Notes: a model not told the origin generated them from the sequence alone. DNA of 64,000 bases from Octopus sinensis (GCF_006345805.1 NC_043016.1:28210001-28274000), one strand, 5' to 3'; shown: positions 1 through 35,911, numbered from the stretch's first letter. Numbers and translations are program-made.

Positions 1-212
1 GAGAGAGAGATGAATATCATGTGGTGAGGATCATTGATATCCTTCATTTTTGCCTCTGCAGAATTAAATATTAGAAATGTTATAACACTGTGGATGTAAC
101 ACGATGATGATGACTATTCTCTGTTGAATCTACACCATTTTTAATGTTATACTATTCCATTTGTTTTATTAAATATATAACTAATAATGATTTATTTTTC
201 TTTCCTTGACAG

Positions 213-404
213 TATTATTACTTTATTGGGTATTTCATCGTGTGGTTAATGGTTAATTTAGTCCAAATTGTGAAAAATCAACCAAGACTTGGTCACTATG
301 AATTTCAAAACTTATCGACACAGTTGATAAGAATTGAATTCTTTGTTACGTTTCTGTCAGGGCTGGCATATATGGCTTTTCCACATTTTTTGACTACCTT
401 GTTT
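213..404 (+). CDS. Exon (equivalent to exon 4) of plus-strand paralog, tandem TP53I11/PIG11-like membrane protein
   Basis: ttccttgacAG acceptor, GTAAGT donor at 405, 192 nt phase 0: YYYFIGYFIVWLMVNLVQIVKNQPRLGHYEFQNLSTQLIRIEFFVTFLSGLAYMAFPHFLTTLF. Upstream exons lie outside the window. Confidence 0.88.
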
Positions 405-2154
405 GTAAGTTTTCTCTTTTAATCTTTCTAATTTTCACCAGCTGACATTGGCAACATGTCTAATGTTGGATCTGTTAACTGTATGAATAATAAAACTGCT
501 GCTGTTAATAAATATTTATCTTGCTCCCAATTTGTCAGCATAATTAGGTATGGTCCGTTTCTCTGACCTGAGCTGGGTTACACAATCTGTAAGAGATGAA
601 AGTAGGGAATCACTGATTGCTGATTTTAAACTTTTCTAAAACAGACAGTACCATCTGTCATTGTGTTAATTTTTTTATCCTCCTCTTGTACAAAATAATG
701 ACAGTTTAGACTTACCGTAAAACATTATTAGCAAAATATGGTTCAAATACCTCCTTATTGAAAAGAAAGGTATACAAAAGGGAACAGTGACAACCTAAAC
801 ATATGGATAGGAGCACTAGAGGGAAAGCATATTGATGGCACAGTTGATTGATATGTGGTTTACTGGATTGTTGCCAGTTAAGCGTGTTAGTCATGGATAT
901 GCTACAGTTAACTATACCTTACTGTGCTACCTACATACAAAGGTAGCAGGGTTTGGGAGAACAGAAGGTAAGGTCTTGTTGCCCTTTCATGATTTAAATC
1001 TGGTAACTACTGAGAATTTGAACAGACAAAAGGGAGCTTCTCTTTGGTTTCTAATCAGCTAGAAATAACAGCAAGGAGTGGGAATGTGTGTATGAGATAA
1101 AGACTAGATGGTGGTGGCAAGAATGTCTTTGAATAAAGCTGACTTTGAGCCAAACAAAATAATGCTTTTTAGCCCTAGATTATTGCTAAGGAGTTGAACT
1201 ATCCTGAGGGATGTTCCAGTTTTGACCATCCCATCTTGATGTCAGTCCTATCGCCTTTGCCCTTCCATATTTTAAGATAGTAAAGTGGAGTTGAAGGGTG
1301 ATTTGGCTGTTATTTCTCGCAGTTATTTAATTTGAGCTATTGTATAGAACAGGCATGCTCAACCTCTTTTTGTTAGGCATGCCAATCACAATGCCCTTGG
1401 GTTCCAGTTTTCCCTTGCCTGTTAGTAGAGATCCTTCTGTCTCCCCTCATTTTATATGGCTTCTTTCATTTGTCTTTTATTACTTCCCATGTCACCATGT
1501 CATTGATGGAGTGGAAGAATTCCCTCACCAGCAATAAATCTGTGTCATTTTTATGGCTTCATCTCAGTTTTTTTTGTTTGGTACCAATTTCTTTGAGCAC
1601 TGGATGGATAGAAGAAGCACATTGCTGGTCAAATTGTTATCAAGTCTGAGAAAATGCTTAGTGCCCATTTCTTCTTGCTTTACTGGGGTTGACTTTGCCA
1701 TTCATCCTTTTGGAGTTAAGATATGTACTAGTTAAGCACCATCCCCTAGACTTTAGCAGCTTGTGCCAAAATTAGGAAGAATTAATATTATTATACAATA
1801 AGAAAAACCTATTTGAGGTTGTTCATAATTTTTGGTCACAAAAACCTAATTAAACTGCTTTTTTTTTTAACCCGTTAATAATTAAAGTCTCTTAATTATC
1901 AACAAGCAATTTAACATTTTAGTGATGATTACTTTATATTGATTGTATGTGTTTTGTGTATTTAAGTATGTATGTTATATTTAATGAACTAACTGCTATA
2001 AACAATATTAAATGTTTTATGTCATGCAAACAAGTTCTCTGCTTGACAACTTTCTACACAATTGAGAGAAAATATTTTCTAAAACTTTTTTTCTTCTTTT
2101 CTCTAATTTTCCCATAAAGTATAATTGTTATCCCAAGTTTTAAGTAGTGGTGTA

Positions 2155-2321
2155 CATTAGCATAGCTAGAGTGTGTGCCATCTGGAACGGCCCTTCCGTT
2201 TGCCGACCCCTGGACCTCACAAAAGACGTATTGCATACAGCAGACCCGAAAGTAATGCCCCTTTAAAAGTGCTGCTTGGAGCAGACCACCCCTACTGCCC
2301 ACCCCACTAGCTACACTAGTG
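2155..2321. mobile_element. hAT-type MITE (mirror copy at ~33590-33760; related fragment at ~57980-58101)
   Basis: Imperfect TIR cattagcatagctag / ctagctacactagtg; 8-bp flanks gtggtgta / gtgatgta (7/8 match). Confidence 0.6.
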
Positions 2322-2984
2322 GTGATGTATGTAATAAATTATTGTACTTTATGGTAATTATGTACTAATTGTATCTCAGTGATAATTGTTAGTTATAATG
2401 TATGTAATAAGTTCTTGCTGGAGAGGAAAAGCTCATTGAATCAACAGGAATGTGCCAGGGACTGTAGATAATCTGCAGCTGCCTGGTCAGTTTCACATGT
2501 CATATGCCAAGATGCAGGGCAACAAAGCTTGTTTTGCACTATCAAAATTAATTGCTGTTTTGGGGAGTCCATCAATCATGTTGACAGGAAAGGACAGGCA
2601 TTTTACCTTTTCCTTCTGTCTTTGTAAGATATAGCATGATGAGGGGTAACTGAAAGAACTGAAGATAGGGACTCTTTGTCTTCCAGTTTTCAGCAGAGAA
2701 GGGAGTGGGAGGTGTTGTTACAATAACTTGTTTAGAAAGGTGGGTGTTAGTGGCTAAGAAGGCCTAAACAAAAGGGCTTACTCTTCAGAAGCACTTTTAG
2801 GTCAGAAAATAACATACTAAAATAAGGTACTTGCCTTTGGTGGTTAGGCTAACCTAGCATCTGTGTGTTTGGATATAACAGTCTCCACTATTATATTTTC
2901 TTTGTATTGGCCTCGTTTTGATCCCTTCAGTATATTAAACAAGTAATTCCCACTACTGTTGTTATTTTCTTTCCATTTCTTCAG

Positions 2985-3125
2985 TCTCCAAAACCTGATC
3001 TAATCCATGTATATATAACTCAACTTGTGGGTGGATCGACACTTGGTGGTATTTGGTTATCTTGGTACTCTACGAGTTTTTACCTAGAAAGAGATATAAA
3101 ATCAGTTTTACTCTCTCGTGTTTAC
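2985..3125 (+). CDS. Exon (equivalent to exon 5) of plus-strand paralog
   Basis: ccatttcttcAG acceptor, GTAAGT donor, 141 nt phase 0: SPKPDLIHVYITQLVGGSTLGGIWLSWYSTSFYLERDIKSVLLSRVY; identical by eye to 32782-32922 (-). Confidence 0.9.
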
Positions 3126-4292
3126 GTAAGTATTGTTTTTTGATTTTTTTTTTTCCTTCTATTAAATGTGTATGTTTTACAAGTCAAATGTATCTAAATT
3201 TCTGATTTATTACTACCAATTATTGTATTTCATGGTGTGAATATTTCTAAAAGAGGCTGTTCTCTTTTATTTAGCCTTGCTATAATTAAATTGATGTTTG
3301 GTAGACAGGTACATGCTATTTGTTAATTAGTCTACCAGTTTATGCTAGTGGACATGCTAAAACAGCTTTGCTTGATTGAACAAATGATCAAAAAGTTTGT
3401 CAGCCAATTTAATATAGTTTCTGAATTGCAAGCTTGGTTCTTCATGATAGTTACACTATAGAAATAAGGGTAGTTGAACTTTTAGTCCTGCTTATAGCTG
3501 AATTGTATTGATGAGTATATAGCTTAATGAAACTATTAAGTCCTTCTTGTTTACTGCAAGGCCAGTAATAACTTGTTGATCTAATGAAAAGCAGCTGTAA
3601 TCATTTTGACCATGTGGTTATATATTGTAAGCTTTCCAGAGTATTTTACGGTTATATCAAGTGACTAATATCAACATTCTCTATTAGTGTATAGAATAAA
3701 TTGAAAATGCACAACATACAGTGTTATACAGAATATTCCACAAATCAGTGTGCATTTTTCTTTTTCCTTGCATTTTAATTAATCAAACAGATTTATCTAA
3801 TATTCTTAGATTTACATGGTGCTGTAGGTCATGCAGGCTTTTATGCTTTCCAATTCTGTATTTCATATTGTGAGATATTTTTCAGCCAGATTTTTATGTC
3901 TGGTTACTTTTCCTCAGATTGGAGCACATGCACACCAAGTAATATAGTTTGTCATTGACAGTAAAGTTCTAGGCCTTTTCAGTTCATGGCACTTTTGGCT
4001 TTCATAAAAGAAACAAAACTGTTATGGAATACATCAATGAACATTGGAGGAACTGTTATTTGGTTGGCCATTTTTCATAACTGGCTTTAGTTGGCCAAAT
4101 TTGCCATTCAACCTCTTAATATATAAATGTCTACAATACTCTTTAATTAGTTCCTGTTTATACAGTTTAAATGTATTTTTCTCACTCAAATTGTCAACTG
4201 TTGCAATAAGCTGTATTGTTTTTTGATTCTGTTCTCCATTTCAATGTTGTTTGCCAAAGTTTATCTGCGTTTTTTTTTTCTGTCTCTCTCAG

Positions 4293-4466
4293 ACAACAAT
4301 CATAATTTTTGCTGTGATAACCCAAAGCCACTTCATGCTAGGATATCCTAAACTGGAGAATATGTGGTTGTTCTTCACTTGGTTCCTTCCATTTGTACTT
4401 GCAATTGTTGGTCTCATTATGATAAATGCACGACGAAGATACCCAATAAAGAAAAAGGCAACATAA
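4293..4466 (+). CDS. Terminal exon of plus-strand paralog, ends in KKAT (KKxx motif)
   Basis: Polypyrimidine tract + AG at 4291-4292, phase 0: TTIIIFAVITQSHFMLGYPKLENMWLFFTWFLPFVLAIVGLIMINARRRYPIKKKAT*; AATAAA at 4504 and 4990. Confidence 0.9.
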   Translation, partial: TTIIIFAVITQSHFMLGYPKLENMWLFFTWFLPFVLAIVGLIMINARRRYPIKKKAT

Positions 4467-5044
4467 ATACTTTGCAAAAGACTTCATTTGCAACTCCTAT
4501 GCAAATAAATGGTAACGTGTTTGGCTGAAGCAAATATATTTTTTCATAATTTCTTTATAAATGTTTATTTTTGAAATGATTTTTCTCCTGGCACATTTTT
4601 TGAAGTAGAATTAACTAGCTATGAAGAACATGACATAATTTTAGATGGTAGTTATTTTCATTTGAGTCTAGATTTACTGTTTGTTTTTACTGATAAAGAT
4701 AATTAATATTCCAAATATTATGGAATTTTTAATCACCTCACAGGTGACTTTTCTATGAATCAAACAGTTTAGGCAATACTATATAATCTTCACATCATTT
4801 TTCCTCTAAAGTCTAATTGATATATTTCAATATAATAATCATTGCTCTTAGGAATAGTTGTAATTATATATATTTCTTTAATCCTGTTTATGTAACTATA
4901 ATTAAATCTACAATAGTTTAATGGCTTCACAGCAATTAAGTAAACAACTGATATCCGTCCCCTCACCCCCATCGCCTATTTCCAGTTTTAATAAATTGGG
5001 ACTGGTGTGTCAACTCATTTCAAAAAAATTATTTTTTTTTATTT

Positions 5045-8000
5045 TCAAGGTCTATTAGAGATCATTAATATTTTACAAATGTTGCAGGGGAGAATAATTC
5101 TTTGGTAAAAAAAATAAGAGACGCTTCTTTTCTGGGGTTTTTTTTTTTTTTTTTGAGAAACTGCAGGAGCTATTTGGAGGTCACTTTTCCTTTCTAACTT
5201 GCATTTTTGCTGTCTTACCTCTTTCCTCAATTCTGCTATCAAACACTACCTACTGGGATCATGCTGCTTATTGTTTATTTTTTTCCTTTGTTTCACAAAT
5301 TTGTCTTATCAATTAAATGATGGCACTTACCTACCAGATACACTCACCTTTTAGAATACTATCCAAGACAGTGTCAATATCTGAGGTGAATTACTCGAAG
5401 CAAATTCAATCTTTGAGTTCTTCCAAAAGCCCACAATGTTTGGATTCATACATGCTTGTGATTTGATCAAATTGAGCAGACATGCCCTAGTCACTGTAGC
5501 TTTATTCCTGCTTCAGGAGTTCTTCTACCTAAGCCCCCATGTAATATTAGATGTTTTCATTTTGATTTGAATATTCATGTCATGTTTGCTGTTAAAGACT
5601 TTGCCAGGGTTGTTGCATCATCTAGTTACACATTCCTGCCATGCAGTGTCCAATCTCTTAAAGCACAAATTCTGGTTCAACTGCTTCTTCATGTGTTGTG
5701 CCCCCACTTGGTAGATAATTCCACCTCACCTAGGTCTGCTTTAGGTATTCTCTCTGATATGCGTTAGTAGCTTGTCTCAGTTTTTTTTGGAGTGCTACCC
5801 CTAACACTATTAAATGCTGCCTTTGTAATTTGTGGTCTATTCATCACGGATGCCCATGGATGTTCCCCCACTAGTAATGGTCACAACATTACACATGAAA
5901 TAAATAAGAGAAATACTTTGTCCCATGCAGAAAGTGCAGCAGCTACTCGGTTCACTTTCCCTTTCCTATTCTTTTTTTATTCTTTATTCAAAGCTTTGAA
6001 TTTACAGACTAAATTTCATTGTTTTGCTGTTACCTTTGATGAATAATTAAGAAAAAGTGGTGTGTGTTGCTGGTTTTAGAATTAATGGAGCTACTTTACA
6101 TGTCTACTACGACAGTTACTCGTAGGATTTCCCATTTGGAAACACAAGTTTCCTAAATATTAAGTCTGCTTATTATTTTTGTTTTGCTTTTCGTGTTTTT
6201 GTTTTTATTCTTTTGCACCAAAGGTATGATGGCATGACCAATATTCCACTGAAATGATGGGTCACACTATCCTTATTATGTTGGTCAACATTCTAAGAGA
6301 TGACACTATATCAACATCTGAGATCACTTATGGCAAATTCAGTCTGAGTTCTTCACAAACCCCTCAGAATATTCAGATCATCCACTCTTGTTGTGCATTG
6401 ATGAAGTTCAGCAGAGATGTCCTTCTTACTGTGACTTCTTTCCTATCTGTCTAGGCCCCTAATTAGTATTAGATGCCTTTCATTCTGATTTTCTATAACA
6501 AATCTTCATAGCATGTTTCCTATAAAATACTCTGCTACTGTCATAGCATTATCTGCTTATACCCTCCTGTTTTGCAGTGTCCAATCTAGTAAATCAAATT
6601 CCTTCTCCATGTGTGTGCCCCATTTTGCAGATTATCCCACCTCTCCTTAGACTATGTCTTGGTATTCTTTCTTTCTGTGTTATTATCATTGGTTTACTGA
6701 CATAGCACTTTTTGGTGCTATCCTTAAGAATGTTACATACTGCTCCTTCCAATCTGTTTACTCAATTTTCATGGATAGCAATGGATCTCCTGCCACTGCC
6801 AATAACATTCCTCTTCTGTTGAGCCACAAGGCCTGGGCAGGTTTATACGAGGGATCAGCTGTTTCCCATGCAGTTTGATCCCCCCTCTCCACGCAGCTGG
6901 TGGCTCCAAGGGAACGATGGGTCGATACAGTTTGGTACCAGATGCGTCACAAGAGTTGTCGGTGATGACGTGTTGTGTCAGGCCGCCTTAGGAACTCCAG
7001 TTCCGGATTTTCTGTTGGGGTTTACTCCCTTAGCCTTCCCCAGGAGGGGGTCTTGATATCCAAAATATACATAAAATATATGATGTGAAGTATATAAAAA
7101 TTTATATAATGAGCAAGCTATAAATATATATAATATATAAAAATTAGCGAGAAAAAAAGCAGATATACAGTAAATATATAATTACACATTTATTGGATAG
7201 CTGTTGACTCTCAAGAGTTCCTCTGTCCTTTGGCGGGTTTTGTTTTTCATCCCGCAGGGTGTCCAATAAACACCCTCCTCACCAAGCAAGCTTGGTGGGG
7301 TTGCCAGTTTAGTCACCAACAGCCCGACCATGCAACAGGTTGTACTGGGTTACATGTTACCAGTAGCACTCAAAAGTGACCTGCCAACAACATTACACAT
7401 GAAATAAATATCAGAGATACTTTGCTGAATGCAGAAAGTGCAGGAGCAACTTGGGATCACTTTTCCTCTCTTACTCTCTTTACTCTTTTACTCTTTTACT
7501 TGTTTCAATCATTTGACTGCGGCCATGCTGGAGCACCGCCTTTAGTCGAGCAAATCGACCCCGGAACTTATTCTTTGTAAGCCCAGTACTTATTCTATCG
7601 GTCTCTTTTGCCGAACCGCTAAGTGACGGGGATGTAAACACACCAGCATTGGTTGTCAAGCAATGCTCGGGGGACAAACACAGACACAGAAACACACACA
7701 CACACACATATATATATACATATATACGACAGGCTTCTTTCAGTTTCCGTCTACCAAATCCACTCACAAGGCTTTGGTTGGCCCGGGGCTATAGCAGAAG
7801 ACACTTGCCCAAGATGCCACACAGTGGGACTGAACCCGAAACCATGTGGTTGGTTAGTAAGCTACTTACCACACAGCCACTCCTGTATGTTTTCTTTTAA
7901 GATTTTCAATTTACAGACTAAATTTAATTGTATTGCTGTTACCTTTGATGAATAATTAAGGAAAGGTGTTTGTGTTTGCAGGTTTTAGAACTGATAAAAC

Positions 8001-9140: not shown

Positions 9141-9202
9141 GTAGTTTGAGTTCCAATATGGAACATGAACTGGGGTTAGCCATAGGAACATAGCTCTCTT
9201 AA

Positions 9203-9422
9203 CCCTTTAGTGTTGAGATTAATCTGTTAAATGTAATACTTTTTTCACTCAAATTATTTTCAATTAATCATACATTATCTTACAGCTTTGAAGTTTCAAT
9301 GGTGTGATAGTTTATTCTTAGAATGTCAATGTAGGTTAGGTGTGAGGGGTTAGATATGGCCAGTTTGAATGTAAACATGTAGGATATTTGGGCCGGATAT
9401 AGCCAGCTTAAACACCAAAGGG
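9203..9422. mobile_element. piggyBac-type MITE
   Basis: TTAA on both sides; TIR CCCTTTAGTGTT / AACACCAAAGGG. Confidence 0.8.
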
Positions 9423-17599: not shown

Positions 17600-20160
17600 A
17601 TGTCCTGCGCCGTGAGGATGAAAGACTTGAGGTATTTCGTGTTGCAAGACAGTGTGTGAGAGAGAATCGTGATGTGGTAGGAGAGAAATGTGTTCGCATG
17701 GAGGATGGTTCACTTGCGCTAAATGAGGATGCAAAGAGAGAAGCTTGGAGACGCCACTATGAAAGGTTACTGAATGAGGAAAATGAATGGGATAAAGAGA
17801 GTCTGCCGAATGTTGACCCTACAGAGGGACCAGCTATCCGAGTTGATAGTTCCGTGGTAGCTAAGGCAATTAGAAGCATGAAGACAGGGAAGCCCCAGGC
17901 CCATCAGGAATTACTGCAGAGATGCTCAAAATATCTGGCAGTGTCGGCTATAACCTAGTCACCCGTATAGTCAACCAGGTGATACACGAAGGAGTCATAC
18001 CCAATGACTGGTGCAGCAGCATACTAGTCAACTGCTACAAAGGTAAAGGTGATGCCCTAGATACAAATAATTACAGAGGTATCAAGCTGTTGGATCAAGT
18101 AATGAAGGTTACGGAGAGGGTCATAGCCCAACTAATTAGAGAGAGAGTTAGTTTAGATGAGATGCAGTTTGGGTTCGTGCCAGGGAAAAGTACCACTGAT
18201 GCTATATTCCTGGTAAGGCAGCTGCAGGAGAAATACCTAGCCAAAGATAAGCCCCTGTACCTTGCTTTCGTTGACATGGAGAAAGCTTTTGATAGGGTCC
18301 CCCGATCCCTTATCTGGTGGTCAATGAGGAAACTAGGGATAGATGAATGGCTGGTGAGGACTGTGCAAGCCATGTACAGAGATGCCGTAAGTAAGGTTAG
18401 GGTTGGCAACATGTACACAGAAGAATTCAAAGTAGAGGTTGGGGTCCACCAGGGTTCAGTACTCAGCCCCCTCCTATTTATCATAGTACTCCAGGCAATT
18501 ACGGAGGAATTCAAGACAGGCTGTCCCTGGGAGCTCCTCTACGCTGACGACCTTGCTCTTATTGCTGAGTCACTATCAGAACTGGAGGAGAAGTTCCAGG
18601 TGTGGAAGGAGGGTTTAGAATCAAGGGGCCTTAGAGTCAACCTAGCTAAAACCAAAGTACTAATAAGTAGAAAGGTAGACAATCCACAAATATCTTCAGG
18701 AAGATGGCCCTGCTCGATCTGTAGAAAAGGTGTAGGTAGAAACTCTATAAGATGTACCCAGTGTAAGCTATGGACACATAAGAGGTGCAGCAATGTCAAA
18801 GGTAGGCTAACTGGGAAGATAGTTTTTGTATGTGGCAGATGCTCGGGAGCATTAACCTCCGAAAATCTGCAGAAAACAACTTCCGTCACTTTCCAGGGGG
18901 AAAAACTAGAAGTAGTTGATAGCTTCCGTTATCTAGGTGACCAAGTCAGTAGTGGGGGTGGGTGCGCTGAAAGTGTAACTGCTAGAATAAGAATAGCCTG
19001 GGCAAAGTTTAGGGAGCTCTTACCTCTGCTGGTGACTAAAGGCCTCTTGCTCAGAGTAAAAGGCAGACTGTATGATGCGTGTGTACGAACAGCCATGCTA
19101 CATGGCAGCGAAACATGGGCCGTGACTGCTGAGGACATGCGTAAGCTCGTGAGGAATGAAGCCAGTATGCTCCGATGGATGTGTAATGTCAGTGTACATA
19201 CTCGACAGAGCGTTAGCACCTTGAGAGAAATGTTGTACCTAAGTAGCATCAGTTGTGGTGTGCAAGAGAGACGATTGCGCTGGTATGGTCATGTGGCGAG
19301 AATGGATGAAGATAGGTGTGTGAGAAAGTGCCAATCCCTAGCAGTTGAGGGAACCCGTGGGAGAGGTAGACCCAGGAAAACCTGGGACGAGGTGGTGAAG
19401 CACGACCTTCGAACTTTAGGCCTCACTGAGGAAATGACCAGAGACCGAGACCTTTGGAAATATTCTGTACGTGAGAAGACCAGGCAGGACAAGTGAACCC
19501 AGCCCACTTATGAATGCCTTTCCTCCCTTGGACACAAAGACCGGCTGAAGCAAGCGAAGTCGATATAGAACCTCATCCGACGACAGACACCCATGCCAAC
19601 CCCCCATGCTTGCGAAGACATGTTGGGGCAAGCGAAATCGAAATCGAAACCGAATTGAACCAGCCAGAATCCCTGGCCTGGTGGTACGTAAAAAGCACTA
19701 TCCGACTCGTGGCCGTGGCACGTAAAATACTCCAATGCGACCGTACGACAGGCACCCATGCCAACCTCCTTTGCTTGTGAAGACATGTTGGGGCAAGCGA
19801 AATCGAAATCGAATTGAACCAGCCAGGATCCCTGGTCTGGTGGTACGTAAAAAGCGCTATCCAACTCGTGGCCGATGCCAGCACCGCCTCGACTGGCTTC
19901 CGTGCCGGTGGCACATAAAATACACCAATCTGACCGTGGCCGTTGCCAGCCCCGCCTGGCACCTGTGCAGGTGGCACGTAAAAAGCACCCACTACACTCA
20001 CGGAGTGGTTGGCGTTAGGAAGGGCATCCAGCTGTAGAAACATTGCCAAATTAGACTGGAGCCTGGTGCAGCCTTCTGGCTTCCCAGAACCCCGGTCGAA
20101 CCGTCCAACCCATGCTAGCATGGAGAACGGACGTTAAACGACGATGATGATGATGATGAT
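17600..20160 (+). mobile_element. 5'-truncated RTE-clade LINE with (GAT)n tail
   Basis: RT ORF 17656-19496 with one frameshift near 17890 (KTGK/APGPSGITAEMLK); motifs FVDMEKAFDRVP, GVHQGSVLSP, LYADD, RLRWYGHVARM, RGRGRPRKTW; 3' UTR ends gacgttaaacgacgatgatgatgat. Confidence 0.95.
17922..19496 (+). CDS. RTE reverse transcriptase (524 aa open portion) with embedded PHD-type zinc finger
   Basis: YADD motif; CSICRKGVGRNSIRCTQCKLWTHKRC...CGRC fits C4HC3 spacing. Confidence 0.9.
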   Translation: MLKISGSVGYNLVTRIVNQVIHEGVIPNDWCSSILVNCYKGKGDALDTNNYRGIKLLDQVMKVTERVIAQLIRERVSLDEMQFGFVPGKSTTDAIFLVRQLQEKYLAKDKPLYLAFVDMEKAFDRVPRSLIWWSMRKLGIDEWLVRTVQAMYRDAVSKVRVGNMYTEEFKVEVGVHQGSVLSPLLFIIVLQAITEEFKTGCPWELLYADDLALIAESLSELEEKFQVWKEGLESRGLRVNLAKTKVLISRKVDNPQISSGRWPCSICRKGVGRNSIRCTQCKLWTHKRCSNVKGRLTGKIVFVCGRCSGALTSENLQKTTSVTFQGEKLEVVDSFRYLGDQVSSGGGCAESVTARIRIAWAKFRELLPLLVTKGLLLRVKGRLYDACVRTAMLHGSETWAVTAEDMRKLVRNEASMLRWMCNVSVHTRQSVSTLREMLYLSSISCGVQERRLRWYGHVARMDEDRCVRKCQSLAVEGTRGRGRPRKTWDEVVKHDLRTLGLTEEMTRDRDLWKYSVREKTRQDK

Positions 20161-21760: not shown

Positions 21761-24700
21761 CACTGGCCAAAACTACGATTTTGATTTCACTTGACTCAAC
21801 AGGTCTTCTCAAGCACATCATATTGCCCAATGATTCAAGGGTACTTTTAAATGGGCTGGTTATGCAACACTGGCATCAGCCATAGCTGCAATCTCGCTTA
21901 ACTTTCTGGGTTTTCTCAAGCACAGCATATCGCCAAAGGTCTCAGTCACTTGTCATTGCTTATGTGAGGCCCAACATTTGAAGGTCATGTTTCACTACCT
22001 CATCCCATGTCTTCTTGGGTCTACCACTTCCACTGTTAGGGTGTGACACTTCACACAGCTGTCCTCACCCACATGCAACACATGATCATACCAGTATAAT
22101 CATCTCTCTTGCATACATTTGATGCTTCTTATGCCTAACTTTTCTCTCTGTTGTGTATGCACACTGACATGACACATCCAGCGGATCATACTAGCTTCAT
22201 TTCTTTCAAGCCTATGCATATATTCAGCAGTCATGGCTCAATTTTTACTGCTGTGTAGCAAGGCAGTTCGCACATTAAAAGCAGCTCTAACAATACACAA
22301 TATCATGTGGTATGTTTTATCAGATCTGCTTTTAATTCAAAATTTAATTTAGTTCCACATGTGCTATGCACATCAGCAAATAAAGCTCTTAGTGCATGTC
22401 ATTTAAGTGCATCTGCTACTTACAAAACTAGATTTCTCTATTAGCTGGTCTATGATCCCACAACACTCATTGTGCATCAATACGTTTTATGGAGTACAAC
22501 AATGGGTTTCTAATCACTACTTTTCAACACATTGAGCATGATCTTTTCCCTGATGGTAGCAGGATTATGTCTTGTTTTAAGGCGGCAAGCTGGCAGAATT
22601 GTTAGCACAGTGGGTGAAATGCTTAGCGGTATTTCGTCTGCCGTTACGTTCTGAGTTCAAATTCCGCCGAGGTTGACTTTGCCTTTCATCCTTTTGGGGT
22701 CGATAAATTAAGTACCAGTTACACACTGAGGTCGATGTAATTGACTTAATCCATTTGTCTGTCCCCTCTGTGTTTAGCCCCTTGTGGGTAGTAAAGAAGT
22801 AGTTATTTCATCTGCTGCTACGTTCTGAGTTCAAATTCCACCAAGGTAGACTTTGCCTTTCACCCTTTCAGGGTCGATTAAATAAGTACCAGTTACGCAC
22901 TGGGCTCAGTATAATCAACTTAATCCGTTTGTCCCCTCTGTATGTAGCCCCTTGTGGGCAGTAAAGAAATAAGATGTCTTGTTTCCTACTAACAATAGTT
23001 CATTAAAAAGTAGTCGATAGCTTAACTAGTAAACAATTGGTTGTGGTTCTGTAAGTAATGTAGCGTGAGTAAGAACAGGTTGCAGGAAGTTCAGAGAGCT
23101 ACTACTACTACTGACAACAAAACCCTTTTTTTTTTTTACAGTGAAGGGCAGACTGAGTCATGCTTGTGTTACAATTGTCATCCTGCATTAAAGCAAGCAT
23201 GGGCCTTGAATGCAGAAGTTTTGAGAAAACTGTGGGGAAAAATGAAGGAAACAATGAAAGTTTGCATGAACGAGACTGTACACATATGTGGAGAAAAACT
23301 TAGGCATAAGAAGAATCAGATGTAATGTGCAAGAAGACTTCATGCAACATGTACAGATAAGGACAGCTGCATAAAGTGCTGATCACCATATTTAAATAGA
23401 GTTTTGCAATAGAGGAAGACATGGAATCAAGTGTGAAGGCTGATCTCTGGACCCTGAACATCACAGAGATGACAAAAGAACTGCTGGTAATATATGGTTC
23501 TTTAGAAATCTATCCACCTGAATGACACTAAGATTCTGGAAGCACTAGCCTGGGGTAGTCTTCAACCTGTCCAGCTCCTGTCAAACTGTCTAACCCATGC
23601 CTGCATGGAAGGTGGATGTTAAACGATGATGATGATGATGATGATAACATCACATCTACCCAACCCAGTTTCCTTCTTAGGACTTTCTTACCATCTATCA
23701 TTTCTCTAAACTGCAGTATTCTGCTGTCGTAATTGTACTGAACAGCCGTACTTCACTGATACCACCTATTCCTCTTACAACCTAGAACCATTTCATTTAT
23801 TAACCATCCTTTTTTAATGCTGTTCTCTCCCGTCACTTTCTACATTAAATGTCTTCAACCACACATCATCTCTTTCTCTCATCTCCTGTCCCTCTCAGTG
23901 GTATTATCATTACTATTCTACTATTTCTTACTCTGCCTTCTACTGTCAGTTAGTTCCTACTCTCCACTCCTTATCCCCACTATTCACATCTACCTTGCAA
24001 CTTTACCCAATTTCTAGATTTTTCACTCTTCTCTATATATCATCCCTAAACGTGTGTTCATTATTATATTCACTCCTCACCCATCTAGGCAAAAGAGACC
24101 AACAGAATAAGTACTAGTCTTCAAAACCCAAAGGAATGAACTTTTCAACAAAGATCCTTCAAGGTGTTGCTTCAGCATGACCACAGTCCAATGACTAAAA
24201 CAAGACAAAGGAGAAATCTTTTTTTTTCCTTTTTGCTTGAAAGAATAAAAAACAAAAACCTTCATAGAAAAATTCATAAATTTTATTAAAAATTTTTTTT
24301 CTCGTCTGAAAATGTTTTTAAGAATGAAATAATTTGAGCAAGGTGGTCATTAATATCGAGTCATTTAAAAAATGTTTAATTCCAAATGATATGTATGCAT
24401 ATAATAAAGACATTGTTAATTATTTTAATGACAACTACCTTCTAAAATCTTAAGCAACAATACTATGAAAACTTAATAATACAATATATTCCTTCTTTTA
24501 GGAAATAATAAATTGTATTGCACAATACAAATAAGATTTTTTTTTCAAACAATTGCTGTTAGAACAGCAGAAATATTGGGTTAATTATCCTAACAGAGTG
24601 GAAAAATTTGTCAACAAACAGCCATTGGACTCAAACCCACATCCCTCACAACTCTGGCTGAGTGCTTTACCATTACGTTAAACTGCCCACTAACAAATTT

Positions 24701-26110: not shown

Positions 26111-29100
26111 TGGCCTAAAATTAATGAGAGCTAAATAGCATGACTATATGCCCTGGTGGTGTTTGATCAGAGGTTAAAAGATGGATGAGAATTAATTCTG
26201 TAATGCAATCATTCTATTGTTCCAGTTCCAAGTTGAATTCCAACTGTTGGCCAATTTGCCCTAAAGTTATTATCTCAACATAAGCGAATGTCATTTACCT
26301 CCCCCTTGATTTCTGATAAACGCCAACCAAGATGGCATGACTCAGCCAAGCTTTACCTGCTAGAAGTAGCAACCCAAATGCTTCTAAATCAGATCCCAAT
26401 GCTGAATGTTTAAGAACCAAATGAAGGGCAGATTTTCAATCCTGGGATTATTCTGGTACCAAAAAGGTATATGTTTATGTAGAGGAAATGTGGACTGAGA
26501 TACAGAGATCCTGAACAAACAGAATTTCGTGTTTATTAATATAGACGGATGATGAGAATTGAAGTTGGGGTACTCTTCTGTGAATGTTGGTTTTGAATAT
26601 AGTGAGTGGAATGAGAACAGTGTACCTCCATGTATCAAAGGGTTAGGTTTGAAATTCTGATACAACTGAGTTTGACACAAGACACTAGTAGAAGGCTGCA
26701 GGGTAGAACAGTCAAAACATAGTGAAAGCAACAATCAAGATGAGGACATCAGTTTGATTAATGTAAATAGGGTACATAATATAAATTCCTCATTGCAGAA
26801 ATTGTGTTTCTATGATAGTAGCCAAAGGGAGCAATAGAGGCTTTCAGCTACCAATGGGAATTGTTGTGATGGAAATTAGCCAAAGTTTTAAATATAAGTA
26901 GTGGAGGTTGGACCTGTATTATAAAAGCAAGTGGAGGAGGAGTGCATTGCAAAATCAGGTGGGCTTATGTAGGAGTTATTTGTGTCGATATGATTCTGTA
27001 TGAGAATACTAAAGGAATTAAGGGAGAAAGATGATTATGAAATCATAATTAAATCTTTAACCCACCTTTGTTAACCCAATCAACTTTCTAACACAGTGCT
27101 CCCACCCCCTACCTCCATCCTGCACAACAAAAACTCCAATAGTATAAGGATTATATCCAGCACCATAAAGATCCATAATACAGGTATCCTTTGGCAACAC
27201 CATGAAATGAGAAACTAACATGTACCTGTCACAGCAGACCTGCTCCATGAAAGGCAAGTTGAAACAAGCATGTTTTCTGTATTTTCCAACAGTTGATCCT
27301 ACTATATTGGGTTGATGGTAAACATTCAAAAGCTGCCTACACCAACTCAACTCATTCTGCTATCTGGAATAAAACCTCCACATCTCTCTCCAAACACATT
27401 TGGAAATCAAAGAATACAAAAAAAGCAGATACCACATGGGAAATCATTGAATACTAGAGAAATGGATAGATGGTCTACAGTCTTCCTCATAGTTTCCCTA
27501 ACAGCTTTCACCCAACTATAATCCTAAAGAAAAGAACCAAACTCATTGCAAATTACTACCATATACCAAAGTTCCTGTTGGTCAGCATGGAAGAAGTGAT
27601 ACTTACTGAACCTAAAAGAATGGGTATCATGAAATACAAAATCAATCATGTGGCTAATTACAGGTGCTTGACCACCATTTAAGATCTACTGATGAGAATG
27701 GTGAATTTATAAGAAACAGTGAAATAAGAGGAAATAACTATCTAAATTAAAACATTTAAGGCAATATTGAAGGTGTAAATGCAGAAAAAGTTTATTTTGC
27801 ATATCTCTAATAACATTATTTATAAAATCAAAGTGAAATACATACATGTGTGTGTGCATGCAAACACATATCAGTAAATGTTAAGAAAGAAAATTCACAT
27901 TTTCAATAATATTTGTTAATTTGGCAAATATCTGCACTATTAAGGCACACTGATCTTAGAATATAGAAACTGAGGAAAACCTGGTTCTCCCTAAAAATAT
28001 ATATTTATCATTGTTTTTATACCACAAATCATTAAATATCCAAAATCTTTCAACAAAAGACTATACCAACTTTAAAGGAAAAGATTTTGAAGTTGTTTGA
28101 TCAGTCAATCTAGTAAATAACAGCAACTGAAATACAGCCATGAATAAAAGATATAGTTACAGAGACAAAAAAAGTTTAACACTGCACATATGTGAAAATA
28201 TATAAACAATGCAGAAAAAAGATTTTTAAAATGCTGGTCTGAGTTGTTACATTTGTTTCTTCCCTCTTGTTCATAAAACACTAAGTTTTCCCTAGTTCAG
28301 CTATAAACTATTAATTAGCTATTGTGTTGCATAATATGAAAATATCACAACAAAAAGTATTAAACATGTAAAGCTTGAGTAAACAGAAAGTAAAACCAGT
28401 TAAGTTTTGAAATAGATGGAGTAATCTGAAAGATTCCAGCCAAGTCTGAAATCATATTTCAATGATATAAACAAAAAATGGTAATACACAACATTTTTGA
28501 TTAGTTCATGAGTCAAAAATTAAATCATATTCAGTTTTTAAATGTAATTCTAAACCAGTCTCTCTTTTCAATGTGTTACTAACACATTCCAAATAACCAA
28601 AATAGTTTTGATGAGAAGAGGTCAATAGGTTAAAGTTCATGTATGGCAAGGCAAGGTCAAAAGGACAAGTAAACTTCCTAGAGAGAGGAATAGAGAGAAG
28701 GAAGCCCACTAACTCTACGTTTCATTATAGTGTTAGTTCTAATAAACTAAAAGTGATTATATTTAATTTCTGTAGAATGGTTAAGAATTTAGTTTGTGGT
28801 CACAAATTTCTGAATTCAGCACCCAGGGTGGCATCTATCTACAGCAAGTGTCATTTGCCATTGTACCTCTAATACAAAAAGGTACAGCCTTGGGTCTTCA
28901 TGACAGTTATAATTAACATTCTTGTTGCCATAGTACTACTGAAAATTTACTGCCTTTGTTTGAATTAGTTTTGAAAAGGATAACTCAGTAAAATAACTCA
29001 TTATTAATGTAGTATTTGAAACGTATTTTAGCACGAAAATTTGATGGAAGGTTTTAATTTAGATCACTTTGAAACAGGAAGATTGCATCATAGAACCAGG

Positions 29101-29871
29101 GTAAGTCTCAGGAGAGTTGGTATCAAAAGGTGTGTGTGTGGAACACGCAGTCACTTACAAGCTAATTCAATGAGCAGATAATCCAGTTGATCAAACAACT
29201 GAATATGTATCATCGTCAATGCCAAAAGAGATCAATTTTATTTGTTAAACACGAAGAGACGCCTTCAGTATAATAGCTGACATCAGATGAACAATACTTC
29301 AGATCTGTTTGAATAAACAAAATATTAGTGACCTCTAATAGACCTTGAAATATTCAGGGAGACAGTGTGAGTACAGTCGATTATATCAACCTAAGTATGT
29401 GACTAGCACTTTATTTTGTTGACTCAAAAGGATGAAAGGCAAAATGCACCTTACTGAGATTCAAATTCCAAATGGCAAAGCCCATGACTAAATGTCACAA
29501 TGGACAGCTGAACTAGTTTTATCAATTCTAAAACCAACAAACACACACAGCTTTTTGCTTAGTATTCAGCAAAGTTAACAGCATAACAATCAAATCATTT
29601 TGTAAATAAAAAAAAAACCAAAGCCTTCATCTTGAATGAAAATATGGTTAAATATTGTAAAAAAAAAAAAAAAATAATAATAATAAAAAGCAAATGTCAT
29701 TTGGCAATACATTGTAGAAAATAGCATGACAAGGAAAAACATTTAGAGAAATTAATTTTTGTTTTTTTAATGAGTGGATGTAAGAGAATGGAGGTAAAAA
29801 TATAACCAACCCTTCTTAATGTAAAACCTCAAATATAACACCACTGATATAATGATAACATATCAGTTGTC

Positions 29872-30325
29872 AGAAAGACTTCCTCCTGCCCCCCGCCCCC
29901 CTTCTTGCAAATTATTGTTTTCACTTAAAAAGAAATTTTTTTTGCTGAAAACCCATGTTTTCGGATATGGAGATTCCAGAAAATTGCAAAAGATTGGAAT
30001 TTTGAAATTCCGCCCCGCCATTCCCCCCTCAATTTCTTCATTTTTCACTCTTTCCCATAACCCAAACCCTAACCAGAAAAATTTTTTGAAATTTGTTTCA
30101 GAATCATAACCTCCATATTTTTCTGCATATTTACAAGAAAAAAAAAAAAAAAACTTGAAATTGAAAAATTTAGGTGGTGGTGGCAGATTTCAAAATGCTG
30201 ATTTTTACCAATTTTTTTGCAGATTCATATTCTCTGTAGATGGGTTTGTGTAGAAAAAGAAAAAGAAAATAAAAAGAAAAGGGGTGTTTTTTGGGGGGTG
30301 GGGGGTATAAAAAGGAAGTCTTGCC
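29872..30325. mobile_element. Palindromic MITE (GGCAAGACTTCC-type TIR, 8-bp TSD)
   Basis: agaaagacttcc...ggaagtcttgcc; flanks cagttgtc / cagttgtt; same family as 46124-46594. Confidence 0.75.
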
Positions 30326-30899
30326 CAGTTGTTTAATAAAGGTACAGAGCACCACGACGCATAATCACGGAGGTGTGAGTTCGAGTCTCATAGCCGGCCA
30401 CCAACACTTTTTAATTTAAGGCGTAGGAGTGGCTGTGTGGTAAGTAGCTTGCTTACGAACCACATAGTTTCGGGTTCAGTCCAACTGCATGCCACCTTTT
30501 ACTATAGAGTCGGGCCAACCAAAGCCTTGTGAGTGGATTTGGTAAACGGAAACTGAAAGAAGCCCATCGTATATATGTATATGTGTGAATATGTTTGTGT
30601 GTCTGCGTTTGTCCCCGCAAACATCGCTTGACAACCGATGCTGGTGTGTTTACGTCCCTGTAACTTAGCGGTTCAGCAAAAGAGACTGATAGAATAAGCA
30701 CTAGGCTTACAAAGAATAAGTCCTGGGGTCAATTTGGTCGACTAAAGGCGGTGTTTCAGTCAAATGACTGAAACAAGTAAAAGAGTAAAAGAGATACATT
30801 AATGTGAAAAGCACAAATTTTATTAACAGAGATGATGGAATTAAAGGGAGGTAAAAAATTTTCTAATGTTTAATAGCAGGTAAAAACAAACTTTAAAAA

Positions 30900-33800
30900 A
30901 AAAAAAGAATTTTTTTTTGAAATGAGTTGACATGCCAGTCCCAATTTATTAAAACTGGAAATAGGCGATGGGGTGAGGGGACGGATATCAGTTGTTTACT
31001 TAATTGCTGTGAAGCCATTAAACTATTGTAGATCTAATTATAGTTACATAAACAGGATTTTAAAAAAAATATGTAATTACAGCTATTCCTGACAATGATT
31101 ATTATATTGAAATATATCAATTAGACTTTAGAGGAAAAATGATGTGAAGATTATATAGTATTGCCTAAACTGTTTGATTCATAGAAAAGTCACCTGTGAG
31201 GTGATTAAAAATTCCATAATATTTGGAATATTAATTATCTTTAATCAGTAAAAACAAACAGTAAATCTAGACTCAAATGAAAATAACTACCATCTAAAAT
31301 TATGTCATGTTCTTCATAGCTAGTTAATTCTACTTCAAAAAATGTGCCAGGAGAAAAATCATTTCAAAAATAAACATTTATAAAAGAAATTATGAAAAAA
31401 TATATTTGCTTCAGACAAACACGTTACCATTTATTTGCATAGGAGTTGCAAAATGAAGTCTTTTGCAAAGTATTTATGTTGCCTTTTTCTTTATTGGGTA
31501 TCTTCGTCGTGCATTTATCATAATGAGACCAACAATTGCAAGTACAAATGGAAGGAACCAAGTGAAGAACAACCACATATTCTCCAGTTTAGGATATCCT
31601 AGCATGAAGTGGCTTTGGGTTATCACAGCAAAAATTATGATTGTTGTCTGAAGAGAGACAGAAAACAAAAACGCAGATAAACTTTGGCAAACAACATTGA
31701 AATGGAGAACAGAATCAAAAAACAATACAGCTTATTGCAACAGTTGACAATTGAGTGAGAAAAATACATTTAAACTGTATAAACAGGAACTAATTAAAGA
31801 GTATTGTAGACATATATTAAGAGGTTGAATGGCAAATTTGGCCAACTAAATAACAGTTCCTCCAATGTTCATTGATGTATTCCATAACAGTTTTGTTTCT
31901 TTTATGAAAGCCAAAAGTGCCATGAACTGAAAAGGCCTAGAACTTTACTGTCAATGACAAACTATATCACTTGGTGTGCATGTGCTCCAATCTGAGGAAA
32001 AGTAACCAGACATAAAAATCTGGCTGAAAAATATCTCACAATATGAAATACAGAATTGGAAAGCATAAAAGCCTGCATGACCTACAGCACCATGTAAATC
32101 TAAGAATAATTAGATAAATCTGTTTGATTAATTAAAATGCAAGGAAAAAGAAAAATGCACACTGATTTGTGGAATATTCTGTATAACACTGTATGTTGTG
32201 CATTTTCAATTTATTCTATACACTAATAGAGAATGTTGATATTAGTCACTTGATATAACCGTAAAATACTCTGGAAAGCTTACAATATATAACCACATGG
32301 TCAAAATGATTACAGCTGCTTTTCATTAGATCAACAAGTTATTACTGGCCTTGCAGTAAACAAGAAGGACTTAATAGTTTCATTAAGCTATATACTCATC
32401 AATACAATTCAGCTATAAGCAGGACTAAAAGTTCAACTACCCTTATTTCTATAGTGTAACTATCATGAAGAACCAAGCTTGCAATTCAGAAACTATATTA
32501 AATTGGCTGACAAACTTTTTGATCATTTGTTCAATCAAGCAAAGCTGTTTTAGCATGTCCACTAGCATAAACTGGTAGACTAATTAACAAATAGCATGTA
32601 CCTGTCTACCAAACATCAATTTAATTATAGCAAGGCTAAATAAAAGAGAACAGCCTCTTTTAGAAATATTCACACCATGAAATACAATAATTGGTAGTAA
32701 TAAATCAGAAATTTAGATACATTTGACTTGTAAAACATACACATTTAATAGAAAGGAAAAAAAATCAAAAACAATACTTACGTAAACACGAGAGAGTAAA
32801 ACTGATTTTATATCTCTTTCTAGGTAAAAACTCGTAGAGTACCAAGATAACCAAATACCACCAAGTGTCGATCCACCCACAAGTTGAGTTATATATACAT
32901 GGATTAGATCAGGTTTTGGAGACTGAAGAAATGGAAAGAAAATAACAACAGTAGTGGGAATTACTTGTTTAATATACTGAAGGGATCAAAACGAGGCCAA
33001 TACAAAGAAAATATAATAGTGGAGACTGTTATATCCAAACACACAGATGCTAGGTTAGCCTAACCACCAAAGGCAAGTACCTTATTTTAGTATGTTATTT
33101 TCTGACCTAAAAGTGCTTCTGAAGAGTAAGCCCTTTTGTTTAGGCCTTCTTAGCCACTAACACCCACCTTTCTAAACAAGTTATTGTAACAACACCTCCC
33201 ACTCCCTTCTCTGCTGAAAACTGGAAGACAAAGAGTCCCTATCTTCAGTTCTTTCAGTTACCCCTCATCATGCTATATCTTACAAAGACAGAAGGAAAAG
33301 GTAAAATGCCTGTCCTTTCCTGTCAACATGATTGATGGACTCCCCAAAACAGCAATTAATTTTGATAGTGCAAAACAAGCTTTGTTGCCCTGCATCTTGG
33401 CATATGACATGTGAAACTGACCAGGCAGCTGCAGATTATCTACAGTCCCTGGCACATTCCTGTTGATTCAATGAGCTTTTCCTCTCCAGCAAGAACTTAT
33501 TACATACATTATAACTAACAATTATCACTGAGATACAATTAGTACATAATTACCATAAAGTACAATAATTTATTACATACATCACCACTAGTGTAGCTAG
33601 TGGGGTGGGCAGTAGGGGTGGTCTGCTCCAAGCAGCACTTTTAAAGGGGCATTACTTTCGGGTCTGCTGTATGCAATACGTCTTTTGTGAGGTCCAGGGG
33701 TCGGCAAACGGAAGGGCCGTTCCAGATGGCACACACTCTAGCTATGCTAATGTACACCACTACTTAAAACTTGGATAACAATTATACTTTATGGGAAAAT

Positions 33801-35911
33801 TAGAGGAAAGAAGAAAAAAAGTTTTAGAAAATATTTTCTCTCAATTGTGTAGAAAGTTGTCAAGCAGAGAACTTGTTTGCATGACATAAAACATTTAATA
33901 TTGTTTATAGCAGTTAGTTCATTAAATATAACATACATACTTAAATACACAAAACACATACAATCAATATAAAGTAATCATCACTAAAATGTTAAATTGC
34001 TTGTTGATAATTAAGAGACTTTAATTATTAAGGGGTTATAAAAAAAAAGCAGTTTAATTAGGTTTTTGTGACCTAAAATTATGAACAACCTCAAATAGGT
34101 TTTTCTTATTGTATAATATTAATTCATCCTAATTTTGGCACAAGCTGCTAAAGTCTAGGGGATGGTGCTTAACTAGTACATATCTTAATAACTCCAAAAG
34201 GATGAATGGCAAAGTCAACCCCAGTAAAGCAAGAAGAAATGGGCACTAAGCATTTTCTCAGACTTGATAACAATTTGACCAGCAATGTGCTTCTTCTATC
34301 CATCCAGTGCTCAAAGAAATTGGTACCAAACAAAAAAAACTGAGATGAAGCCATAAAAATGACACAGATTTATTGCTGGTGAGGGAATTCTTCCACTCCA
34401 TCAATGACATGGTGACATGGGAAGTAATAAAAGACAAATGAAAGAAGCCATATAAAATGAGGGGAGACAGAAGGATCTCTACTAACAGGCAAGGGAAAAC
34501 TGGAACCCAAGGGCATTGTGATTGGCATGCCTAACAAAAAGAGGTTGAGCATGCCTGTTCTATACAATAGCTCAAATTAAATAACTGCGAGAAATAACAG
34601 CCAAATCACCCTTCAACTCCACTTTACTATCTTAAAATATGGAAGGGCAAAGGAGATAGGACTGACATCAAAATGGGATGGTCAAAACTGGAACATCCCT
34701 CAGGATAGTTCAACTCCTTAGCAATAATCTAGGGCTAAAAAGCATTATTTTGTTTGGCTCAAGTCAGCTTTATTCAAAGACATTCTTGCCACCACCATCT
34801 AGTCTTTATCTCATACACACATTCCCACTCCTTGCTGTTATTTCTAGCTGATTAGAAACCAAAGAGAAGCTCCCTTTTGTCTGTTCAAATTCTCAGTAGT
34901 TACCAGATTTAAATCATTAAAGGGCAACAAGACCTTACCTTCTGTTCACCCAAACCCTGCTACCTTTGTATGTAGGTAGCACAGTAAGGTATAGTTAACT
35001 GTAGCATATCCATGACTAACACGCTTAACTGGCAACAATCCAGTAAACCACATATCAATCAACTGTGCCATCAATATGCTTTCCCTCTAGTGCTACTATC
35101 CATATGTTTAGGTTGTCACTGTTCCCTTTTGTATACCTTTCTTTTCAATAAGGTGAACCATATTTTGCTAATAATGTTTTACGGTGAGTCTAAATTGTCA
35201 TTATTTTGTACAAGAGGAGGACAAAAGATTAACACAATGACAGATGGTACTGTCTGTTTTAGAAAAGTTTAAAATCAGCAATCAGTGATTCCCTACTTTC
35301 ATCTCTTACAGATTGTGTAACCCAGCTCAGGTCAGAGAAACGGACCATACCTAATTATGCTGACAAATTGGGAGCAAGATAAATATTTATTAACAACAGC
35401 AGTTTTATTATTCATACAGTTAACAGATCCAACATTAGACATGTTGCCAATGTCAGCTGGTGAAAATTAGAAAGATTAAAAGAGAAAACTTACAAACAAG
35501 GTAGTCAAAAAATGTGGAAAGGCCATATATGCCAGCCCTGACAGAAACGTAACAAAAAATTCAGTTCTTATCACCCATGTCAATAACACTTCAGGTTCAT
35601 AGTGACCAAGTTTAGGTTGCTTTCGTATAATTTGGACTAAATTAGCCACTAACCACAGGCAGAAGTTCCCAAGAACAAAGTAGAGAAACTGTCAAGAAAA
35701 GAAAAAAAAAAAAGATCATTAGTTATATATTTAATAAAACAAATCAGAATTAAAACAATTATTATTAGAAATAACTAGAATAGTATAGAAGAGAATAGTC
35801 ATCATCATCGTGTTACATCCACAGTGTTATAACATTTCTAATATTTAATTCTGCAGAGGCAAAAATGAAGGATATCAATGATCCTCACCATATGATATTC
35901 ATCTCTCTCTC
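30900..35911 (-). repeat. Right arm of the ~5 kb inverted duplication
   Basis: Reverse complement of 1-~5040 with scattered substitutions and short indels. Confidence 0.97.

Follow-up and report, generated by a model that had tools for sequence, protein, structure and literature searches.

An inverted pair of DUF8292 genes in Octopus sinensis with 3′ regions kept alike by gene conversion

The window analyzed here is a stretch of 64,000 nucleotides of chromosome DNA from Octopus sinensis (GCF_006345805.1, NC_043016.1:28210001-28274000), which contains no N and has a G+C content of about 36%. It carries two paralogous gene copies of the DUF8292 family in tail-to-tail orientation, LOC115222545 on the minus strand (minus copy) and LOC115222697 on the plus strand (plus copy). 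The 3′ parts of both, introns included, form the arms of a near-identical inverted repeat. The same arrangement was found in Octopus vulgaris, and the comparison of the four copies confirmed an older pair under gene conversion, which has still been acting since the two species split. The locus as a whole is probably best explained by an ancient inverted duplication, of which the 3′ 6.5 kb have been homogenized by conversion and the plus copy is decaying.

Structure and identity of the inverted arms

Window positions 1-5049 are the reverse complement of 35911-30891. By BLASTN, the two are 96.8% identical in an alignment of 5076 columns that includes 82 mismatches and 27 gap openings. In the MAFFT alignment of the in-window arms, 4904 matches, 87 mismatches and 88 gap columns were counted, which corresponds to 98.3% over the aligned bases. 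A repeat search returned the same inverted arms as pieces of 93-100% identity. The inverted repeat between 1 and ~5040 and between ~30900 and 35911, which the initial annotation had described, was thus borne out. Its length of about 5 kb proved too short, since the window edge cuts the left arm.

The missing part was found in the O. sinensis record around the plus copy (L005), in which window position 1 corresponds to L005 9630 and the overlap is identical base for base. In this record the left arm extends 1465 bp further to the left. The whole arm (plus -1465 to 5049, minus 37469 to 30891) measures 6.5 kb with an identity of 98.2%, which rises to 99.1% without two diverged patches. At the inner end, the arm homology terminates within a poly-A/T run. 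The following parts of the repeat were distinguished:

1-5049, plus strand: left (plus-copy) arm, in-window part; another 1465 bp precede the window
30891-37469, minus strand: right (minus-copy) arm, complete, 6.58 kb
120-345, plus strand: diverged island of 225 bp with 79% identity across the boundary of intron 3 (~90 nt) and exon 4 (~130 nt)
35553-35790, minus strand: partner of the island in the minus arm; O. bimaculoides and Argonauta have the minus type here
4845-5049, plus strand: inner arm end with 92.5% identity and shared paralog-specific differences; partner 30891-31093
2101-3940, plus strand: youngest O. sinensis conversion tracts, without any mismatch at 2101-3140 (1039 nt) and at 3157-3940 (784 nt)
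5050-30890, no strand assigned: spacer between the arms, 25.8 kb, rich in transposable elements (TE), with the same orientation in O. vulgaris

The identity profile along the arms, with the 79% island, the inner end at 92.5% and the tracts without mismatch, excludes the uniform low divergence that the initial annotation had named as the sign of a simple recent duplication. In exon 4, the 5′ two thirds are diverged between the copies and the 3′ third is identical, exon 5 is identical throughout, and exon 6 encodes the same peptide. The statement that the peptides of exons 5 and 6 are the same in both arms was therefore correct. The mirrored intronic TE relics, mentioned in the same place, could be traced only weakly, as arm positions 2184-2321 match the mariner-like relic at 57982-58104 at 69%.

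A further extension of the arms to 7528-7800 and 30496-30759 was considered and rejected. This pair belongs to a dispersed element of ~400 bp, which is present in five copies in the window.

The two genes and the extent of the duplicated segment

LOC115222545 comprises six coding exons on the minus strand (49681-31474), all of them in phase 0 and with canonical AG/GT splice sites. Their spliced product of 299 amino acids (aa) corresponds exactly to XP_029648666.1, 'uncharacterized protein LOC115222545 [Octopus sinensis]'. The coding exons of both copies are located as follows:

49511-49681, minus strand: minus copy exon 1, carries the ATG; no counterpart in the plus copy
40524-40673, minus strand: minus copy exon 2
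39855-39923, minus strand: minus copy exon 3
35494-35688, minus strand: minus copy exon 4
32782-32922, minus strand: minus copy exon 5
31474-31647, minus strand: minus copy exon 6, includes the stop codon
L005 5558-5707: plus copy exon 2
L005 6337-6405: plus copy exon 3
213-404, plus strand: plus copy (LOC115222697) exon 4, one codon shorter than minus exon 4, first ~130 nt diverged
2985-3125, plus strand: plus copy exon 5
4293-4466, plus strand: plus copy exon 6, includes the stop codon

Exons 4 to 6 of the plus copy are flanked by canonical AG/GT sites at the same places as in the minus copy and are likewise in phase 0, which agrees with the earlier description of the same three spliced exons in each arm. 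The RefSeq model of LOC115222697 covers 115 aa and starts at a Met within exon 4. Upstream of position 1, where the counterparts of exons 1 to 3 were to be expected, exons 2 and 3 of the plus copy were present and exon 1 was not found.

Beyond the outer end of the arm, two further parts of the minus copy were compared with the plus copy:

37470-39619, minus strand: middle of intron 3, unalignable between the copies, each with its own content including copies of dispersed repeats
39620-41000, minus strand: older paralogous block with exons 3 and 2, 89% identical to the plus copy (L005 ~5250-6600, outside the window)

The identity of the block is uneven, with 83-93% around exon 2 and 97% at exon 3. 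The paralogy ends ~300 bp upstream of exon 2 (minus coordinate ~41000), which marks the outer duplication breakpoint. No exon-1-like sequence was detected upstream of the plus copy in O. sinensis L005 1-5557 or in L001 1-9868, the corresponding O. vulgaris record; tblastn with three exon-1 peptides and blastn with a word size of 9 returned chance matches and repeats only. Since the paralogy stops ~300 bp before exon 2 and exon 1 is missing there, the duplicated unit amounts to ~10 kb and comprises exons 2 to 6 without exon 1. A large minisatellite with CT-rich units of 24-28 bp is located 3.7 kb upstream of plus exon 2 in both species (L005 1-1851; L001 ~1800-6150).

In Argonauta hians, one DUF8292 copy was found, which follows a Nudix gene in the same orientation. 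The same order of Nudix and DUF8292 genes applies to the minus copy in the window (Nudix exon at 63562-63828), and because of this match the minus copy is the one in the ancestral position. A second DUF8292 copy is absent from the 10 kb downstream in Argonauta, which is not conclusive, as the octopus spacer measures 26 kb.

Gene conversion before and after the split of O. sinensis and O. vulgaris

In O. vulgaris, both copies are located on one chromosome record. L001 covers the plus copy and the adjoining 10 kb of the spacer, and L003 (OX597829.1) covers the minus copy and the 9 kb of spacer next to it. The copies are arranged tail-to-tail as well, with a distance of 26 kb between the gene ends. 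In unique DNA, O. vulgaris differs from the window by 0.5-0.8% mismatches. As O. vulgaris carries the same pair, the pair is real and older than the split of the two species.

For the analysis of site patterns, 4967 columns of the in-window arm were used, which were aligned in all four sequences. Sites at which the copies differ in both species (paralog-type sites) were found 64 times, with 46 at 21-341, 13 at 4849-5046 and 5 at 958-1867; 59 of the 64 fall into the two diverged patches. Sites at which both copies of one species are alike and differ from the other species (species-type sites) were found 7 times in these columns, always at 2422-4268, and an eighth was located in the arm extension. 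A cross pattern was observed at 1 site in the whole duplicated unit. The two main types are separated along the arm core, with 5 paralog-type and 0 species-type sites to the left of position 2000 compared to 0 and 7 to the right (Fisher P = 0.0013). In a Sawyer-type permutation of the variable sites, the longest concordant run had a P value of 0.0075 between the two copies of O. sinensis and of 0.012 between those of O. vulgaris. Between 2101 and 3940, there are 0 mismatches between the two O. sinensis copies compared to 17 differences from O. vulgaris.

With the O. bimaculoides scaffold L004 as a reference, 5 species-type sites were found at which the O. vulgaris copies share a derived state and 2 at which the O. 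sinensis copies do so, and therefore both lineages have converted since the split. The arm is a mosaic of different histories. One part (~350-1900 and most of the extension) was homogenized before the split and another (~2100-4800) after it, and the islands were not, or not recently, converted. The initial annotation had left a recent inverted duplication and an older pair under conversion side by side and favored the latter. The older pair is the one supported by the same arrangement in O. vulgaris, by the uneven identity of 79-100% and by the species-specific states common to both copies. As for the suggested check of other octopus assemblies and of clustering within species, the pair is present in O. 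vulgaris, and the paralogs are alike within species at the 8 sites.

Exon 3 of the plus copy encodes IVVLEYH in O. sinensis (L005 6337-6405) and ILTLAYH, the minus type, in O. vulgaris (L001 10648-10716). The minus-type exon suggests that O. vulgaris has a small conversion tract of its own at this place, which would be located outside of the main arm.

Direction of conversion and state of the plus copy

The singleton states are distributed unequally between the copies, with 42 in the plus copies and 14 in the minus copies (P = 2e-4). At 10 singleton sites a lone plus copy keeps the O. bimaculoides state and the other three copies are derived; the mirror case with a lone minus copy was found once. 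The O. vulgaris plus exon 5 carries four replacements at conserved positions (T to I; FYLE to FCIK), which are absent from the O. sinensis plus copy. In turn, three replacements in plus exon 3 of O. sinensis are missing from the O. vulgaris plus copy. From these states we infer, as the simplest reading, that the minus copy has been the main donor and that plus-specific states, whether old or new, have been overwritten at different places in each species.

The coding sequences of the plus copies have changed considerably between the two species. Within 242 codons, 13 amino acid differences were found between the plus orthologs of O. sinensis and O. vulgaris, with a ratio of nonsynonymous to synonymous substitution rates (dN/dS) of 0.67 based on small counts. 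Over the 299 codons of the minus orthologs, no amino acid difference and a single synonymous change were found (Fisher P = 3e-5 for the amino acid differences). Exon 6 of the O. vulgaris plus copy (L001 18190-18363) has a TGA where O. sinensis has CGA, eleven codons ahead of the regular stop; by this premature stop 11 residues are lost, and it is missing in the other three copies. The family-conserved Arg90 is a Cys in the plus copy of one species and a His in that of the other. Between the paralogs, the dN/dS was determined to be 0.98-1.33 for exon 2 and 1.2-1.7 for the exon-4 island (small counts). Within the island, intron and exon have diverged to the same degree, which suggests neutral divergence. 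For ~40 neutral substitutions, the probability of not producing any stop codon was roughly estimated to be near 0.2, so that the intact frames of the plus copy are weak evidence.

Judging from these sequence comparisons, the plus copy is rather likely to be a non-functional, decaying and 5′-truncated partial copy; that it is a working divergent paralog appears unlikely. The suggestion of the initial annotation that two membrane proteins share a fixed C-terminal repeat and potentially differ in their N-terminal repeats has become doubtful in this respect, given a plus copy without exon 1, a dN/dS of ~1 and 13 replacements including a nonsense codon.

The history of the locus was probably as follows. 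A segment of ~10 kb, reaching from ~300 bp upstream of exon 2 to ~580 bp beyond the stop codon, would have been duplicated in inverted orientation long before the split of O. sinensis and O. vulgaris, giving a tail-to-tail pair that is 25.8 kb apart today. Non-allelic (intrachromosomal) gene conversion between the inverted copies would then have rewritten the 3′ 6.5 kb repeatedly. The outcome would be the observed mosaic of post-split tracts in both species, pre-split tracts and two small islands keeping the original divergence of ~10-20%. The minus copy would mostly have acted as the donor, and the 3′ exons of the plus copy most likely look intact because conversion keeps refreshing them.

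Age of the duplication and the situation in O. bimaculoides

In the unconverted parts, the paralogs differ by 11-21% mismatches, which is 15-30 times the divergence between O. sinensis and O. vulgaris and at least as high as the divergence from O. bimaculoides (8-14%). At 45 sites of the island, O. bimaculoides agrees with the minus type, compared to 9 sites at which it agrees with the plus type. Using Argonauta as an outgroup, 16 changes in exon 4 were found to be private to the plus copy. The duplication probably took place no later than the O. bimaculoides split.

Exons 4 to 6 of O. bimaculoides are located on an unplaced scaffold of 7.6 kb with five N runs (L004; LGKD02052202.1, 1-7607), which is 86-92% identical to the arms. 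The scaffold breaks off precisely at the inner boundary of the arm. The repeat may therefore also be present in O. bimaculoides and have broken its assembly there. The O. bimaculoides chromosome locus at the Nudix gene (L006; one fifth N) reaches the equivalent of window position ~54659, before the DUF8292 gene.

Evaluation of alternative explanations

Several observations weigh against an ancient, converted pair with a decaying plus copy. The species-type evidence rests on 8 sites, and in either assembly polishing with reads that map to both arms could account for some of the perfect identity. When exon 4 is compared using the Argonauta outgroup, 4 sites favor a duplication before the O. bimaculoides split and 3 are in conflict with this. 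A first exon of the plus copy may lie upstream, beyond the flanks examined. Furthermore, plus exons 2 to 6 retain their open frames, phase and AG/GT sites in both species, the sole indel of plus exon 4 removes one codon in frame, the plus replacements slightly favor family-variable positions (one-sided P = 0.048), and a gene was called at the plus copy in both annotations (115 aa and 186 aa). The intact frames and splice sites, the in-frame deletion and the gene models would also fit two working genes, with the plus copy being a neofunctionalized paralog that uses its own first exon or an internal start and in which selection guards exon 2 and the different helix 5 and loop (5′ half of exon 4) from homogenization, with conversion fixing the shared C-terminal repeat. 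In addition, the plus copy keeps the invariant D94 and R105, several of its changes are conservative, and the island with its dN/dS of 1.2-1.7 is flanked by converted sequence. Two working genes are nevertheless given a small, though appreciable, chance. There is no exon 1 within 5.5-9.8 kb upstream and the paralogy ends within intron 1, the island is no less diverged in its intronic than in its exonic part, and the 13 replacements including a nonsense codon between very close species stand against 0 in the minus copy. Moreover, the four replacements in O. vulgaris exon 5 strike the conserved FYLERD stretch, and at a chance of ~0.2 for ~40 neutral changes to remain free of stops, the intact frames count for little. 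It is similarly unlikely that the 225-bp island, which covers helix 5 and the next loop, is held apart by selection in homogenized surroundings and that a functional plus copy differs N-terminally. If true, an exon segment that resists conversion and diverges in function would be embedded in a homogenized inverted pair of DUF8292 membrane-protein genes.

The remaining explanations are considerably less probable. Inverted false duplications and the homogenization of repeats through polishing are known assembly errors. A mis-joining of haplotypes or of a foldback read, or true paralogs made near-identical by polishing, would fit a region that is hard to assemble, as can be seen from the unplaced 7.6-kb O. 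bimaculoides scaffold with exons 4 to 6 ending at the arm boundary. Such an artefact is very improbable, as two independent assemblies of two species agree on arms, spacer, orientation and patches, the copies differ in their flanks, in intron 3 and in exons 2 to 4, and both assemblies show species-type sites with different derived states. The sharp edges of the exon 4 island within near-identical sequence could also be due to a patch that the plus copy received from a third, more distant member of the family elsewhere in the genome. However, two protein searches yielded no third octopus family member, the divergence of the island is comparable to that found in the exon-2 block and at the inner arm end, and the plus island and the minus copy have octopus-specific states in common compared to Argonauta, so that this origin is given very little credence. 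The long stretches of 100% identity between the arms would be expected from a simple recent inverted duplication, for which conversion is unnecessary. This is contradicted by the orthologous O. vulgaris pair, which shares the 64 paralog-specific sites, by an identity that changes from 79% to 100% along one unit with a different intron 3 content in each copy, and by the region 2101-3940, in which the O. sinensis copies are closer to each other than to their O. vulgaris orthologs; a recent origin is thus the least credible of all. The ancient inverted duplication with conversion of its 3′ part, as outlined above, is therefore preferred.

The encoded protein and its family

Relatives of the LOC115222545 product and the gene models on L001-L005 carry precomputed assignments to Pfam PF26941 (DUF8292). 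The family membership rests on these precomputed hits (P0001-P0004; gene models of L001-L005), as a Pfam scan of the single exons and of the whole protein, using a set without PF26941, gave no match. In an exhaustive search of 1.84 billion representative proteins, 45 relatives only were found. All DUF8292 relatives that were looked up belong to molluscs or the brachiopod Lingula, and every one of them is uncharacterized. No octopus transcript-derived family member was found in the protein collection. A literature search, including octopus combined with gene conversion, found nothing about DUF8292 or this octopus locus.

The N-terminal and C-terminal halves of the 299-aa protein are homologous (hhalign probability 98.6%, E = 6e-16), and the second half is encoded by exons 4 to 6. 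This is in line with the remark on a C-terminal repeat in the initial annotation. The repeat is visible only by profile comparison, since BLASTP of the N half against the C half gave no match. The AlphaFold model, built from 31 sequences, reached a predicted local distance difference test (pLDDT) score of 92.8 and a predicted template modelling (pTM) score of 0.90 and contains nine long helices in the order 4+4+1. The LOC115222545 product is predicted to be a membrane protein of nine helices with two internal repeats.

Foldseek against the PDB returned no convincing match to a solved structure (best E = 0.011). The tumour protein p53-inducible protein 11 family (TP53I11; PF14936), which resembles the octopus protein as a small multi-helix membrane protein, is a possible distant relative. 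Weak matches to PF14936 were found in 2 of the 31 DUF8292 members (E = 0.013-0.08) and not in the octopus protein itself; they remain far below the Pfam gathering cut-off, with ~13 bits compared to a cut-off of 27.

The O. vulgaris gene model CAI9734526 (741 aa; L003 10001-84439) is a chimeric fusion of RF-1, Nudix and DUF8292. It draws LOC115222545 into a 90% cluster with a Nudix representative, and therefore the gene is hidden from homology searches. The minus proteins of O. sinensis, O. bimaculoides and O. vulgaris all fall into this Nudix-represented cluster.

Repetitive elements in the window

The window is crowded with TE relics. In the middle of the spacer (17874-19493, plus strand), an open frame of 540 aa with a reverse transcriptase (RVT_1) and a PHD-like finger was identified, and weaker relatives of this frame are located at 52065-53174 and 21909-22274. 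Relics of a DDE_3 transposase (45176-45940, minus strand) lie inside intron 1 of the minus gene, and a relic of a mariner-type transposase (57776-58090, plus strand) is found between the minus gene and the Nudix gene.

The dispersed element of ~400 bp is similar to a short interspersed nuclear element (SINE). Its copies at 7479-7884, 30425-30793, 43536-43933, 51796-52037 and 60526-60931 are 80-91% alike, and one copy sits 100 bp beyond the inner end of the minus arm. The segments 54413-54641 and 55464-55600, ~820 bp apart, match the contiguous sequence 57438-57798 at 100% and 99%, respectively. The repeat at 54.4-55.6 kb looks like a very young copy that was split by an insertion.

Significance and comparison with known systems

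The locus is a clear sequence-level case of concerted evolution of inverted paralogs in a cephalopod, with tracts of different age that can be dated against a sister species and with an apparent bias from gene to copy. It is a clean example of a known process and adds no new element type, mechanism or question. In practical terms, the gene models of the region are poor (LOC115222697 with 115 aa, an O. vulgaris model of 186 aa and the O. vulgaris fusion of RF-1, Nudix and DUF8292 with 741 aa), short reads cannot assign exons 4 to 6 to one copy, and the region probably breaks the O. bimaculoides assembly. The intact-looking exons of a duplicate are not evidence of function where conversion refreshes them.

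Inverted arms can be kept alike by intrachromosomal gene conversion, as is the case for the palindromes of primate sex chromosomes. These are similar to the octopus locus in their inverted arms, their unique spacer and a structure conserved across species. In addition, the identity from arm to arm is higher than that between orthologous arms, which holds for part of the arm here. In contrast to the palindromes, the octopus arms measure only 6.5 kb with a spacer of 25.8 kb, unconverted islands remain, and only one arm appears to carry a working gene, so that two good copies are not preserved.

The human gene IKBKG (NEMO) in Xq28 adjoins a truncated inverted copy, IKBKGP1, which is devoid of the 5′ exons and near-identical in the shared part through exchange. 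A functional gene with an inverted partial duplicate that lacks the 5′ exons, and a shared part that is kept alike, are the features common to this locus and to the octopus pair as interpreted here. For IKBKG, a complex structure with pseudogenes has been described (PMC11420330). The octopus pair differs from it in the gene family and the phylum, in the diverged islands within the arm and in the spacer, which is oriented alike in both species compared.

CYP21A2/CYP21A1P and GBA1/GBAP1 are gene-pseudogene pairs in direct orientation and are best known for the transfer from pseudogene to gene. Non-allelic conversion between a working gene and a relaxed copy and the resulting mosaic tracts would be shared with the octopus locus. 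Unlike these pairs, the octopus copies are inverted, and the bias of conversion appears to run from the gene to the copy.

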